This document shows, one piece after another, positions 857 through 17,999 of a stretch of DNA of 64,000 bases. The translations under genes were made by a program, and so were the position numbers. The notes beneath the pieces were generated by a model that saw only the letters and a list, made by a program, of their open reading frames with translations, had not been told where the DNA came from and searched no databases. Position 1 is the stretch's first letter. Each line of letters begins with the position of its first letter. The stretch lies in the sequence record PV037725.1; one strand, 5' to 3'.

Positions 857-1039
857 ATGAAAGACGTCATTCTGGTGATGTTGGTACTGATCACACTGTG
901 TGGTTGGGGTGTATGGGTATGTTCGTTGTTTACAACTAAATACGAATGGGATACCAGTAAAAAGGGTCTATGGTTATTTTTAGTTGCTGTGGGTCTTACA
1001 GCAACTACAATGACATGGTCGATTATCTACGGAGCTTAA
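857..1039 (+). CDS. small membrane protein (2 TM)
   Basis: ATG at 857 (MKDVIL); two hydrophobic segments. Confidence 0.6.
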   Translation: MKDVILVMLVLITLCGWGVWVCSLFTTKYEWDTSKKGLWLFLVAVGLTATTMTWSIIYGA

Positions 1040-1040
1040 A

Positions 1041-1268
1041 ATGATCAAGAACCCAGGAGATGGTATCTATCAATCGCGGTGTACTCATGGACCTAAGACG
1101 TTCTTTGAGCACCGCAACATCTATATCCAAGGGAATACCGTAAGGTTGGTTAACTCTGAACCTAAGGGTAGCCACATGTACAACTTCAGCTTTTGGTTTG
1201 AAGTAAATCAACTAGGTGAACGCCTGGGTGATCTTCCAGCCAACTTCGATATCCACAAGGACGCCTAA
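1041..1268 (+). CDS. hypothetical protein
   Basis: GGAG RBS; tightly packed ORF. Confidence 0.6.
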   Translation: MIKNPGDGIYQSRCTHGPKTFFEHRNIYIQGNTVRLVNSEPKGSHMYNFSFWFEVNQLGERLGDLPANFDIHKDA

Positions 1269-1726
1269 TGAGTTTCTTCCTTAAGATTAATGATGACAAG
1301 ATGGCCTTTGGTGGGATTCAGTCCATCCCTCAGGACTACGGTTTCATCTCTCAGACGCGCGGAAGAGTGTTTGTAGGTGACGATGGGGAGATCACTTCAC
1401 CAATAGGTATCTGGTCTATCGGATCGTCTGTACGGGCCAATCACGCGCTTGGTTACCTTCGACCGTTGAGTGTTATCCATGAGGATAAACTACTCTATCT
1501 TGCTGATAGTCGTGCAGATCTTCAGATCCTTGTAGCAACTGAAACTAAGTTGCATATTTACCAAGGTGGCAATCATACATGGTTACCTATTGAAGATGGG
1601 TTTCTTTACTTCGGGTTGAACGTACCGCGTGTAGACGCTGAGCAGTACATTGCCAGTATCGAGTGTGGTTGCTGCACACCAAAAGGACCTTGGTCTGTTA
1701 CTACCACCTACATCGAGCGTTACTGA
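1268..1726 (+). CDS. hypothetical protein
   Basis: TAATG stop/start overlap; 152 aa. Confidence 0.7.
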   Translation: MSFFLKINDDKMAFGGIQSIPQDYGFISQTRGRVFVGDDGEITSPIGIWSIGSSVRANHALGYLRPLSVIHEDKLLYLADSRADLQILVATETKLHIYQGGNHTWLPIEDGFLYFGLNVPRVDAEQYIASIECGCCTPKGPWSVTTTYIERY

Positions 1727-11381: not shown

Positions 11382-11885
11382 TTATTTAATCAAGATCACA
11401 AATGTATCAGGATGGAAGGTTTCAGCAACCCACTTATTAAATTCACCACGTTTCAGGTAACCTGAGCCTATGGTGAATTGTGCATCGTCAACTACCACGA
11501 AGCGCACATTCTTTTTGACGTCTTCGGGTAACTGTTCATTCCATTTCTCAATTGTACCTGCTGAAGATGGTACAAGTGGAAAATAATCAATTTCTTCACG
11601 ATTGGTGATTTCAATATACTTCTGATTCAAGGCGGCACGCATCTTCGTGTCCTTGGATATCAGAATACACTCATCTGGATGATTGGACATCCACTTGAGT
11701 GCACCTTGGGTAATACCGCATTGACGACCGGCCATCAAACCAATAGTTTTACAATCATTAACTTCCCAAGCTGGATCACTACTGCGCCATTCTTTACCCC
11801 AGCGGTTCCAGCGATCACGGGTAATGACTTCTAAAGCATCGATCATACCGACAATGTCAGCATAAGGTGTAATGTATTGACTCAT
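11382..11885 (-). CDS. degenerate P-loop/terminase-ATPase-like protein
   Basis: AGRQCGIT (Walker A-like, no Lys) and FVVVDD (Walker B-like). Confidence 0.5.
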   Translation of the reverse strand: MSQYITPYADIVGMIDALEVITRDRWNRWGKEWRSSDPAWEVNDCKTIGLMAGRQCGITQGALKWMSNHPDECILISKDTKMRAALNQKYIEITNREEIDYFPLVPSSAGTIEKWNEQLPEDVKKNVRFVVVDDAQFTIGSGYLKRGEFNKWVAETFHPDTFVILIK

Positions 11886-12544: not shown

Positions 12545-13066
12545 TTAAGCGGCTTCATTACAGATAACGAAACCGTCGAAGTTGATTACATCGGCAAGCC
12601 AATCATAAAACTTCGCCCTACGTACCAACTTAAAGAAAGCGTTGGTGTTCTGAATGTAGACTCTACTAATCGGGGAACCAAAGATATCGTAACCTGAACC
12701 GATATAATTAGCTAGTTCATTATGGGTGATTATCCGGCGAACAACACTCCGTGGTAAACTCGTGTCATCGCAGGTCTCACCTGTCATAATGTAGCGCCGG
12801 TTAAAGTTGTAACTACTCCGCAGGCTTTCCCTTACTGTTTGGTTAGGTACTACCAGAATAGCATCGTCGTACTTTAGGAAGTCTGAGTGTGTCCAGAAAG
12901 TAGCACCGCATTGTCGTGGGGCTTTAAAGGCTATAGTCTTGAAGTCACGCAACCATTTTGCTAGATCATCACGTAACCCGCAATCATCACGCATCTGTGG
13001 ACGTTTGTTGATCTGTTCAATCATGCCATCAACGAATCCCTGTATGGATTCAATATGTGGATACAT
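12545..13066 (-). CDS. degenerate P-loop/terminase-ATPase-like protein
   Basis: APRQCGAT motif; paralogue of 11382..11885. Confidence 0.5.
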   Translation of the reverse strand: MYPHIESIQGFVDGMIEQINKRPQMRDDCGLRDDLAKWLRDFKTIAFKAPRQCGATFWTHSDFLKYDDAILVVPNQTVRESLRSSYNFNRRYIMTGETCDDTSLPRSVVRRIITHNELANYIGSGYDIFGSPISRVYIQNTNAFFKLVRRAKFYDWLADVINFDGFVICNEAA

Positions 13067-13085
13067 TGTTATTACCTCTCATGCG

Positions 13086-13112
13086 AAATAAAACCCTCCC
13101 GAAGGAGGGCTT
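13086..13112 (-). terminator. terminator of the tRNA-Leu transcript
   Basis: Minus strand GCCCTCC-TTCG-GGAGGGT-TTTATTT. Confidence 0.75.
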
Positions 13113-13119
13113 AGGAATA

Positions 13120-13204
13120 TGGTGCCGGGAGCGGGGGTCGAACCCGCATGACCTTCGTCGGCGGATTTTAAGTCCGCTGCGTCTACCACTTTCACCATCC
13201 CGGC
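13120..13204 (-). tRNA. trnL: tRNA-Leu (TAA)
   Basis: Cloverleaf with long variable arm, anticodon arm GCGGA-CTTAAAA-TCCGC, GTTCGAC T-loop, encoded CCA. Confidence 0.95.
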
Positions 13205-13488
13205 GTTGTGTGCTGAGCGAACTCAGCACGACGGACTACACTGGTCCGTTGCAGCCCATGATACCTTGGGGAAGGGTGCTCTAAGATCATCAAGCGGATG
13301 GACCTAGAACCTGCATCGTCAGGCGTTCAGTCTATCAGGGTGCGGGTCAGCGATTTCCTCTAGGCTACTCTATTCCGATGTGTCGAGTAGATTCAACAAG
13401 GTCTATAGTTTAATCCACTATTCTGCAATCTTCGACCCAAGTTTGGGGGATTGGGGACAGGTTTCATGGACGAGTGTATTTCTACACA
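13205..13488 (-). ncRNA. candidate structured ncRNA B (~285 nt) upstream of tRNA-Leu
   Basis: GTGTA-GAAA-TACAC 5' hairpin; GTGCTGAG-TTCG-CTCAGCAC 3' hairpin; long-range 5'/3' helices; TATG at start; no credible ORF. Confidence 0.65.
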
Positions 13489-13507
13489 TACTATCTACAT
13501 CTGGGTA

Positions 13508-14083
13508 TTACTTTACCAAGTCGCCCCAGCGTGGATCGAATCCAATCAATTCTTCCCGTGTGAGTTCTCGGAGGCGCCATGCTTGAACTGTATCGTGCTT
13601 AATGGTGTCATCATATCCGGAGAACATGTAACCACCACGTCGATGTACAGCTTTGTCAATACCGATTTCAGCTTCTTCACCTGTTTGAATCAACACTGCG
13701 GACCGTTGAGTCTGACGGAAGCTACTGCGTTTAAGCCCCATTACCCGAAGTGGTGCGGATTCATAGTGTTTATGAATCTCAATAGCCGCAGGTAGTAACC
13801 GACGCAGCTCAAAAATGTAGCTATCGATTACATCCATCTTGTCAAGTTCGGCCAGCAATTCTTCTGGAAATGCGTAGAAGCCTTCATATGGGTGGCCACC
13901 TACATCGACTAGAAATCCAGTGGGTTCCAATCGAGCGTAAAAGTCATCATACGTAATACACTCTTTAAAGTGGTAGTCTGTAACACTATCAGGGTGCGCT
14001 GTGACTGTGATAGTCAGATCACCTTTGGTGAGTGTAATTGGGCCATTTTTATCAATGTAGCGACGTACAGTTATATGTTGCAT
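13508..14083 (-). CDS. hypothetical protein
   Basis: AAGG RBS; 191 aa. Confidence 0.7.
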   Translation of the reverse strand: MQHITVRRYIDKNGPITLTKGDLTITVTAHPDSVTDYHFKECITYDDFYARLEPTGFLVDVGGHPYEGFYAFPEELLAELDKMDVIDSYIFELRRLLPAAIEIHKHYESAPLRVMGLKRSSFRQTQRSAVLIQTGEEAEIGIDKAVHRRGGYMFSGYDDTIKHDTVQAWRLRELTREELIGFDPRWGDLVK

Positions 14084-16340: not shown

Positions 16341-16702
16341 ATACCACACGGCCCAACGAGCAGCTTCAGGATGCGATGGAGGACCTTCAAGTGTATAGTG
16401 GGGATCAGTGCGATCTTATCAATCACCGTATACCCCGAATTTGGGTGGGTTTTATTATAGTGAGCTAACCGCTATCCTCACTCCCAATCGTCGAAGGCTG
16501 GGGACCTCCGACTTACGCTAGGTCGAGCAGACATTCGTCCACCCTTCACTGGTCTAACTAGACCAATGTAAATACACTACAACACACTCTCCGGCGACTA
16601 CGGGTCTTTTCCCTCATCCTAAGGCCCAGGGTCTTCTCACGCTTACGAGGCGCTGGCACTATCGTAATTCGCATGTGTGTTGTATTCCCGTGCACAGGAA
16701 TA
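16341..16702 (-). ncRNA. candidate structured ncRNA C (~360 nt) downstream of tRNA-Ser
   Basis: No credible ORF; helices 16683-702, 16675-82/16580-87 (8 bp perfect), 16550-65, 16460-81, 16400-36. Confidence 0.6.
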
Positions 16703-16796: not shown

Positions 16797-16882
16797 TGGA
16801 GCACACGACAGGATTCGAACCTGTAACCTCCTGCGATGATCTTTCACATCGTAGGACTCTATCCAATTGAGATTACGCCTGC
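16797..16882 (-). ncRNA. tRNA-like RNA with extended anticodon arm
   Basis: Acceptor stem, D-loop AATTGGATAGAG, T-arm ACAGG-TTCGAAT-CCTGT and CCA present; anticodon arm is 26 nt rather than 17. Confidence 0.8.
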
Positions 16883-16884
16883 TT

Positions 16885-16900
16885 TACATAGTATTACACA
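16885..16900 (-). promoter_or_regulatory. late-type promoter (TATG) of the tRNA-like/tRNA-Ser unit
   Basis: TGTGTAATACTATGTA, identical 16-mer to 17984-17999. Confidence 0.7.
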
Positions 16901-17983: not shown

Positions 17984-17999
17984 TACATAGTATTACACA
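17984..17999 (-). promoter_or_regulatory. late-type promoter (TATG) of the tRNA-Tyr/Asn unit
   Basis: TGTGTAATACTATGTA. Confidence 0.7.

Follow-up and report, generated by a model that had tools for sequence, protein, structure and literature searches.

A compact, covarying RNA fold in the tRNA-Leu leader of Pseudomonas phage Viktualia

Introduction

Between a tRNA-Leu gene of Pseudomonas phage Viktualia (PV037725.1, 322,655 bp, host P. syringae) and the stop codon, at 13508, of the open reading frame (ORF) upstream of it there is a 303-nucleotide (nt) non-coding gap. Does this gap encode a functional RNA and, if so, does the RNA serve the tRNA or act in its own right? A preliminary description, made from the letters of the DNA, had proposed that a structured RNA of about 285 nt occupies the leader of the tRNA on the minus strand. 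Both the location and the strand were borne out, the leader lying immediately upstream of tRNA-Leu at 13120-13204, and all of the sequence strings that the description quoted are present where it placed them. Positions throughout are those of the 64-kb stretch of Viktualia DNA that was analysed (hereafter, the window), and features are on the minus strand unless stated otherwise. Based on a comparison of homologous loci, we regard it as secure that the leader (13205..13487, 283 nt from the inferred transcription start) is a selected, compact RNA fold on the tRNA strand, and the comparison shows the predicted fold to consist of ten helices plus a loop-loop kissing interaction.

Results

Homologues of the leader are few. 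In a blastn search 201phi2-1, a nucleus-forming jumbo phage, was the sole match and the alignment was limited to the last ~64 nt of the leader; when the 2-kb stretch around the leader, which matches Viktualia with 100% identity, was compared, 201phi2-1 was also the only clear relative of Viktualia in the phage collection. Protein searches with both flanking ORFs, combined with contig look-ups, gave the Viktualia-type loci L009, L010, L011 and L017 (the L010 contig begins inside the leader, hence its half-length copy), a metagenome pattern scan gave L019 (one true match and one chance match) and a pattern scan of viral contigs gave L004, a metagenomic relative of 201phi2-1. The family assembled in this way comprises five full-length Viktualia-type copies, three of which are nearly identical, one half copy, a long form in L004 and a deletion form in 201phi2-1, and linkage of the leader to tRNA-Leu(UAA) is constant in all 8 loci. 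A covariance model of the ten helices (R1) scored 276-352 bits in the 5 full-length copies and aligned the L004 insert end to end with 52 bits; it detected no paralogue of the leader in the window. The 4 matches of a conserved-junction pattern in viral contigs were all due to chance, as was the only match in a pattern scan of genomes. Remote homologues of the protein encoded downstream of the tRNA were found at unrelated tRNA clusters without the leader RNA, and the Viktualia leader is not related to those that precede tRNA-Leu in phiKZ and HPP-Temi.

The evidence that carries the fold is comparative. Single-sequence folding was modestly better than that of shuffled sequences (z = -1.8 for the 303 nt and z = -2.6 from the inferred transcription start). 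Ten helices were drawn from RNAalifold output and inspection. Pairing is kept in 99.3% of the cells of the model-guided Viktualia-type alignment, with double changes in 12 of the 52 pairs as against 3.7 +/- 1.5 in shuffles (0/500 reach 12) and 0-3 in slid controls; as this alignment was fitted to the structure and its sequences are related, these counts are indicative and are not probabilities. With L004 and 201phi2-1 added, 25/52 pairs show compensatory changes and 2/249 cells are unpaired, a count that may lean towards the structure, the L004 strands having been assigned by eye. L004 keeps the Viktualia helices with largely different bases, and the lengths enclosed by helices are constant across the variants (47-49 nt in P2, 14 nt in the P3 loop, 23-25 nt in P5 and 6 nt in the P6 loop). 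A less biased scan, in which the sequences were cut at helix anchors, the pieces realigned and all runs of at least 4 pairs kept in 4 variants listed, recovered P2 (6/6 pairs covarying), P3, P5, P6, P8, P2a and P2b and added two new elements, the kissing loop and P7'. Because G-U pairs in P2, P5, P6 and P9 would be A-C mismatches on the opposite strand, the structure is that of an RNA on the tRNA strand. The supported fold can compete in energy with the unconstrained minimum: it comes to -76.6 kcal/mol, to which the kissing duplex adds -6.0, as against -83.9.

Read from its 5' end, the fold opens with hairpin P1 (GUGUA-GAAA-UACAC, 13474..13487), which starts at the G of a TATG at 13490-13487 and does not vary within the Viktualia type; in the 201phi2-1 type it is GAGU/ACUC, with one compensatory pair. 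The P2 domain (13413..13471), defined by covariation, consists of P2 (13471-66/13418-13), in which all six pairs covary across 4 variants, P2a (13460-57/13426-23) and P2b (13447-44/13439-36), the latter two with one compensatory pair each. Hairpin P3 (CUACUC/GAGUAG, 13365..13390) has a 14-nt loop, and 4 of its pairs are compensated in L004. Loop positions 5-9 of P3 form one strand of the kissing interaction (CAUCG, 13376..13380) and loop positions 2-6 of P6 the other (CGAUG, 13314..13318), both identified by covariation: the two strands are CAUCG/CGAUG in Viktualia, AGCCG/CGGCU in L011 and GACUA/UAGUC in L004, and 5/5 pairs covary. A counting tool scored double changes at 3 of the 5 pairs within the Viktualia type and at none in slid controls. 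P5 (13332-29/13304-01) and P6 (13324-20/13313-09) enclose a conserved internal loop, GAAY opposite NCUA/AUA, in a covarying segment at 13301..13332; 3/4 pairs of P5 and 4/5 of P6 covary.

The 3' part of the leader begins with a tentative hairpin, P6.1 (GCUUGA, 5-nt loop, UUAGAGC; 13278..13295), whose outer GCU/AGC pairs are invariant; its inner pairs are weak in L019 and L010, and the hairpin at this site in L004 is a different one, of 6 bp and with a 5-nt loop. Next come P7 (CCUU/AAGG) and an overlapping helix, P7' (CCCA 13270-67/UGGG 13258-55), both drawn from comparison and together spanning 13255..13275. P7 is invariant and hence neither supported nor refuted by covariation, and P7' is CUCA/UGAG in 201phi2-1 and L004, with one compensatory pair. 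Hairpin P8 (ACGGAC, 7-nt loop, GUCCGU; 13231..13249) is conserved in 201phi2-1 and L004, and a G-C pair in it becomes A-U in L010 and L011. The last helix, P9 (13210..13229), is the 8-bp hairpin GTGCTGAG-TTCG-CTCAGCAC, with a UUCG loop in the RNA; 4 of its pairs covary across the variants, its loop is GAAA in L011 and a G-U pair in L019 fits the tRNA strand only. The UCAUGGG segment has several candidate partners (RNA positions 19-24, CCUAGA, CCCUGA and CCCA), and it is for P7' alone that a compensatory change is seen, in few sequences. Three further contacts were considered and set aside: L011 and L019 show no covariation in a pairing of UCCGCU, in the leader, with the anticodon stem of the tRNA, the loops of P2b and P8 are complementary in L011 alone, and an RNAalifold helix (GUAGAU/AUCUAC) lies upstream of the inferred start and competes with the covarying P3.

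The preliminary description had recognized P1, P3, P8 and P9, and its proposal that the RNA begins at TATG and ends in two stable tetraloop/hairpin elements (P8 and P9) just before the expected RNase P site agrees with what we found. Its broader claim, of a selected fold on the tRNA strand, stands on the covariation, the conservation above that of neighboring genes, the strand-specific G-U pairs and the lack of a conserved ORF, but its architecture stands only in part, as three of the helices that it proposed are unsupported. The first would join the two ends of the RNA, 13460-69 with 13256-65. This helix shows no compensatory change, and changes in L011 are tolerated through wobble pairs; its 5' strand is also the 5' strand of P2, which covaries with 13413-18, and P7/P7' take up part of its 3' strand. 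It is nonetheless present in the minimum-energy fold of the single sequence and may represent an alternative conformer. The second, a crossing helix between 13423-28 and 13249-54, has 5/6 pairs broken in L011, in register, and the third (CCTAGAG/TTCTAGG) shares positions with P5 and is disrupted in both L010 and L011. P2, P2a, P2b, P5, P6, P7' and the covarying kissing loop had been missed.

Conservation of the leader is at least that of the tRNA, and far above that of the flanking ORFs, in the comparisons with L017, L019 and L011. Identity between Viktualia and L017 is 99.3% in the leader, 65% in the upstream ORF, 78.5% in the downstream ORF and 100% in the tRNA; the values for L011 are 79%, 64%, 68.5% and 77.6%, respectively. 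For L019, identity is 91.5% in the leader, 65.8% in the upstream ORF and 80% in the tRNA, and a different gene lies downstream of the tRNA, from which we conclude that leader and tRNA travel as a module. Strong mosaicism is evident when L017 4001-5579 is aligned with 12545-14083 of the window, the upstream ORF having 65% DNA and 49% protein identity, and this pattern suggests either recombination or very uneven constraint.

The two relatives of the 201phi2-1 type show how the RNA can vary in size. L004 and 201phi2-1 are 83% identical over ~1 kb apart from one clean 362-nt indel within the leader. Since the L004 segment that 201phi2-1 lacks is a homologue of the Viktualia core, the most economical interpretation is that the core was lost in the 201phi2-1 lineage. 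In the L004 form, which is 451 nt long (989-1439, minus strand), P1 and P2 are separated by an additional 5' domain of ~170 nt, in which GCAACAAU/AUUGUUGC form a long-range helix and CCUAAGC/GCUUAGG a hairpin. The 201phi2-1 leader measures 120 nt in the blastn comparison and about 89 nt as the deletion form of the RNA (L002 2473-2561); it shares the 3' module P7'-P8-P9 with Viktualia, with compensatory changes, and lacks the entire core, that is, P2, P3, P5, P6 and the kissing loop. Judged from these sequences, the core is size-variable and dispensable in at least one phage, as would be expected for an accessory function.

The leader appears to form part of a self-contained transcription unit that, from its sequence, looks to consist of a phiKZ-type middle promoter, the 283-nt RNA, an 85-nt tRNA and a terminator. 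An upstream element, AAAGTAATACC (13504..13514, -27 to -17 from the G of TATG), overlaps the stop codon of the upstream ORF. It is similar to AAanTTACc, the motif of phiKZ middle promoters, whose centre is near -24 (PMC4666361); in phiKZ, transcription from TATG promoters begins at the G (PMC4666361). The corresponding TATG of Viktualia is at 13487..13490, and transcription would start at G 13487, precisely where P1 begins. This assignment draws on the motif, on the edge of conservation among homologues, which sets in just upstream of the G, and on 201phi2-1 data: ONT-cappable-seq has shown that the Leu-tRNA of that phage is transcribed from a middle promoter, and has revealed one 5'UTR-derived small RNA immediately upstream of a tRNA (PMC11512511). 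Equivalent promoter motifs are present at the same distance in L019, L011, 201phi2-1 and L004, and within the window they also precede the tRNA-Tyr/Asn pair and the tRNA-like/tRNA-Ser pair. The 13-mer GTGTAATACTATG has 2 exact copies in the window (16887-16899 and 17986-17998, minus strand), each ~20 nt downstream of AAAG(A/T)(T/A)TAC(C) and just upstream of a tRNA gene pair, and is restricted, within the window, to sites upstream of the other tRNA genes. Together the two motifs look like a phage middle-promoter class that drives tRNA genes.

At the other end of the unit the leader, on the tRNA strand between the promoter/TATG (13514-13487) and the tRNA start at 13204, makes up the 5' two-thirds of the proposed transcript. 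A 5-nt spacer, ACAAC (13205..13209), separates P9 from the tRNA, and the position of the tRNA 5' end places the expected RNase P site between 13205 and 13204. The tRNA itself (13120..13204; anticodon UAA, encoded CCA, 85 nt) was called by ARAGORN and by Rfam, at 51 bits. It is followed by a hairpin resembling an intrinsic terminator, CCCUCC-UUCG-GGAGGG, and then UUUUAUUU (13086..13110); this element was read from the sequence, is missing from the terminator-scan output for the window, and is retained with altered stems in homologues as a hairpin plus T-run 3' of the tRNA. A 173-codon ORF lies beyond it, and the ORF upstream of the leader, 13508-14083, has 191 codons.

The leader RNA is a family absent from Rfam. 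At gathering threshold Rfam 15 gave matches to tRNA only across the whole window, and with sensitive filters and E values up to 10 there was no match in 13205-13507 or in the L004 homologue. Individual known classes were also considered. A mini RNase P RNA, suggested by GAGGAAA and CCGCUUGA motifs, was rejected as the P4-type pairing does not form and Rfam gives no match. ROOL and GOLLD gave no Rfam match either and are 500-800 nt or more, as against 283 nt (451 nt in L004). A riboswitch or attenuator would call for an expression platform, but what comes after P9 is ACAAC and then the tRNA: a U-run is absent, and the unit has no coding gene further downstream. A group I intron was considered first for the L004 insert, on account of motifs resembling R and S, and then for Viktualia; the motifs turned out to be the P5-P6 region of the leader RNA, and neither sequence has an Rfam match as an intron.

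Nor does the leader appear to encode a protein: no ORF of at least 20 codons is conserved in any frame, and no frame is open in all 4 variants. GenBank annotates CDS0154, of 33 codons with a TTG start, at 13206-13307 on the plus strand, antisense to P5-P9. Its frame is not conserved, with stops in L011, and on sequence grounds it is probably a spurious gene call.

Elsewhere in the window, the minus-strand ORFs at 12545-13066 and 11382-11885 both match PHROG 2586, a family of unknown function, and hence are paralogues; the family is widespread among jumbo-phage-like contigs. Immediately upstream of tRNA-Ser is an unannotated tRNA-like sequence (16800-16882, minus strand). Its score with the Rfam tRNA model, 26.0 bits, is below the threshold of 29, and it has good acceptor, D and T arms, with 23 nt in the anticodon region where 13 are expected; ARAGORN missed it, and the GenBank numbering skips tRNA0003. 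Downstream of tRNA-Ser, at 16500-16700 on the minus strand, a G+C-rich non-coding stretch of about 200 nt contains many inverted repeats and may, to judge by its sequence, be another structured RNA.

Discussion

Given a selected fold in the leader, we favor the possibility, while being about evenly divided as to whether it is correct, that the leader RNA is itself a gene product, a dedicated unit that is released and acts in trans as an accessory RNA. Transcription would start at G 13487 and host RNase P would cut at 13205/13204, freeing a 283-nt RNA whose new 3' end would be capped against exonucleases by the GC-rich hairpins P8 and P9. The freed RNA could then act in trans as a protein-binding scaffold, a decoy or a self-associating particle, and its core would not be required for maturation of the tRNA. 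From general tRNA biology, release by RNase P is the most likely origin of the 3' end, and we read this end as an RNase P product and not as a terminator because P9 is not followed by a U-run. Our reasons for preferring action in trans are that (i) 201phi2-1, without the core, keeps the tRNA; (ii) other Viktualia tRNAs have short leaders with nothing similar in them and (iii) the RNA evolves more slowly than its tRNA.

Several points weigh against this reading. We infer the start site, the RNase P release and the stability of the RNA in Viktualia, and the neighboring proteins have no recognizable or informative domains that would hint at a partner. Judging from 201phi2-1, the core is dispensable in at least one host. 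The family is tiny (4 clearly distinct full-length variants, one half copy and one deletion form) and the number of independent changes is correspondingly small, some strands in L004 were assigned by eye, and mosaic recombination, as read from the alignments, could have inflated the near-identity with L017.

The main rival is that the leader is a cis-acting regulatory element that sets the amount or timing of mature tRNA-Leu, either as a sensor of temperature, a protein or a ligand or by altering how readily RNase P or RNase E can reach the transcript, and that it has no life after cleavage. We consider this a serious proposal, though one that is probably wrong. Physical linkage to tRNA-Leu(UAA) in all of the loci is what it would predict, as is the position of the P7'-P8-P9 module, which ends 5 nt from the cleavage site and is retained even in 201phi2-1, and the mutually exclusive pairings around UCAUGG and P7/P7' are of the sort that a switch would need. 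However, no expression platform is visible (P9 lacks a U-run, and the unit offers no ribosome-binding site that could be sequestered), 201phi2-1 and the other Viktualia tRNAs manage without the core, and the leader is conserved more strongly than the tRNA that it would regulate.

A bolder variant of the trans-acting proposal, which we think distinctly improbable, is that the RNA is the main product of the unit with the tRNA doubling as its 3'-end processing signal, and that the kissing loop is intermolecular and leads to a multimer; equally bold would be a ribozyme or ligand sensor of a new type, linked to the maturation of tRNA in a nucleus-forming phage. The covarying kissing loops of ROOL and GOLLD are intermolecular bridges between copies (PMC12286853), and covariation alone is blind to the difference between intra- and intermolecular kissing loops. 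Like the Viktualia RNA, ROOL and GOLLD are phage-encoded, elaborately folded and often located beside tRNA genes, but they are 2-3 times larger and unrelated in sequence and secondary structure.

Catalysis, absence of function and a role at the DNA or protein level are all unlikely. A catalytic RNA, either a self-cleaving ribozyme that frees the 5' end of the tRNA or an intron-like insert that splices itself out of a small leader RNA, could account for a compact fold with a tertiary kissing loop and for the clean 362-nt block that is present in L004 and absent from 201phi2-1, and group I introns do occur elsewhere in phiKZ-like phages; those introns are also of similar size and share the pattern of block presence and absence. 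In spite of these similarities we give this idea very little credence. Sensitive Rfam scans of the Viktualia leader and the L004 insert returned no ribozyme or intron model at E values up to 10 (RF00028, for group I introns, and the small self-cleaving ribozymes included), and the supported helices, with no P3-P9 core and no P3/P7 pseudoknot topology, are unlike a group I core. There are no conserved splice-site features: the sole candidate for the U-G pair of a group I 5' splice site lies at the end of P2 and is replaced by U-A in both L019 and L011. A hammerhead-like CUGAUAG varies among the homologues, and nothing in the sequence analysis points to self-cleavage.

Slightly less credible still is the suggestion that this is an ordinary, functionless leader that is degraded after RNase P cleavage and owes its conservation to close kinship or recent exchange. 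L009 and L017 are indeed nearly identical to Viktualia here, mosaicism is evident and the core is absent from 201phi2-1. Nevertheless, compensatory changes in 9 helices and in a loop-loop contact cannot come from hitch-hiking, the leaders of L011 and L019 are still better conserved than the coding flanks, and a 451-nt homologue has the same helices in mostly different sequence. Finally, a role for the DNA itself (a promoter array, an origin or a packaging site) or for a small protein (CDS0154 or a 24-codon minus-strand ORF) is scarcely believable, for while GenBank annotates the 33-codon gene and the 5' end does hold a promoter, CDS0154 is interrupted and the 24-codon ORF is absent in L011, no ORF is conserved, and substitutions track base pairing, in G-U pairs specific to one strand, and not codons.

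Returning to the leader RNA as an accessory, trans-acting product, its nearest relative is the small RNA at the same locus of 201phi2-1, and it is outside every catalogued family tested. The 201phi2-1 locus is homologous, lies between the homologues of gp447 and gp446 and has the same promoter type; the RNA is known there as one found upstream of a tRNA, and no structure or function was assigned to it (PMC11512511). There is also precedent for small RNAs whose ends are made by tRNA-processing enzymes.

Species 1 and 2 of T4 (rnaC and rnaD) are small stable RNAs of unknown function in the tRNA cluster, transcribed together with the tRNAs and freed by the enzymes that process tRNA; they differ from the Viktualia RNA in size (about 120-140 nt), in their unrelated sequence and in belonging to another phage lineage. 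The ends of the E. coli leuZ 3' external transcribed spacer (3'ETS) and of MALAT1/mascRNA are likewise set by tRNA-processing enzymes, the 3' end of MALAT1 by RNase P. The former is a short unstructured sponge and the latter a eukaryotic long non-coding RNA, whereas in Viktualia the RNA precedes a genuine phage tRNA, as its folded 5' leader.

With regard to annotation, an RNA feature should replace CDS0154. Few non-coding RNAs of phages have real tertiary structure, and for most of those few (ROOL, GOLLD and the T4 stable RNAs) no function is known. The RNA described here is a simple, self-contained unit small enough for structure probing, cryo-electron microscopy (cryo-EM) or crystallography, and natural variants (the 283-nt form, the 451-nt form with its extra domain and the 201phi2-1 deletion) are available to guide experiments. 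Viktualia, like 201phi2-1, is probably nucleus-forming, and RNA traffic and processing are open questions in nucleus-forming jumbo phages. If any of the bolder variants were true, the RNA would represent a new functional RNA class in jumbo-phage infection, serving, for example, as a counter-defence decoy or in the handling of RNA between nucleus and cytoplasm. If the RNA acts in trans, it would provide a clear case from a bacterial virus in which a tRNA makes the end of a second functional RNA.

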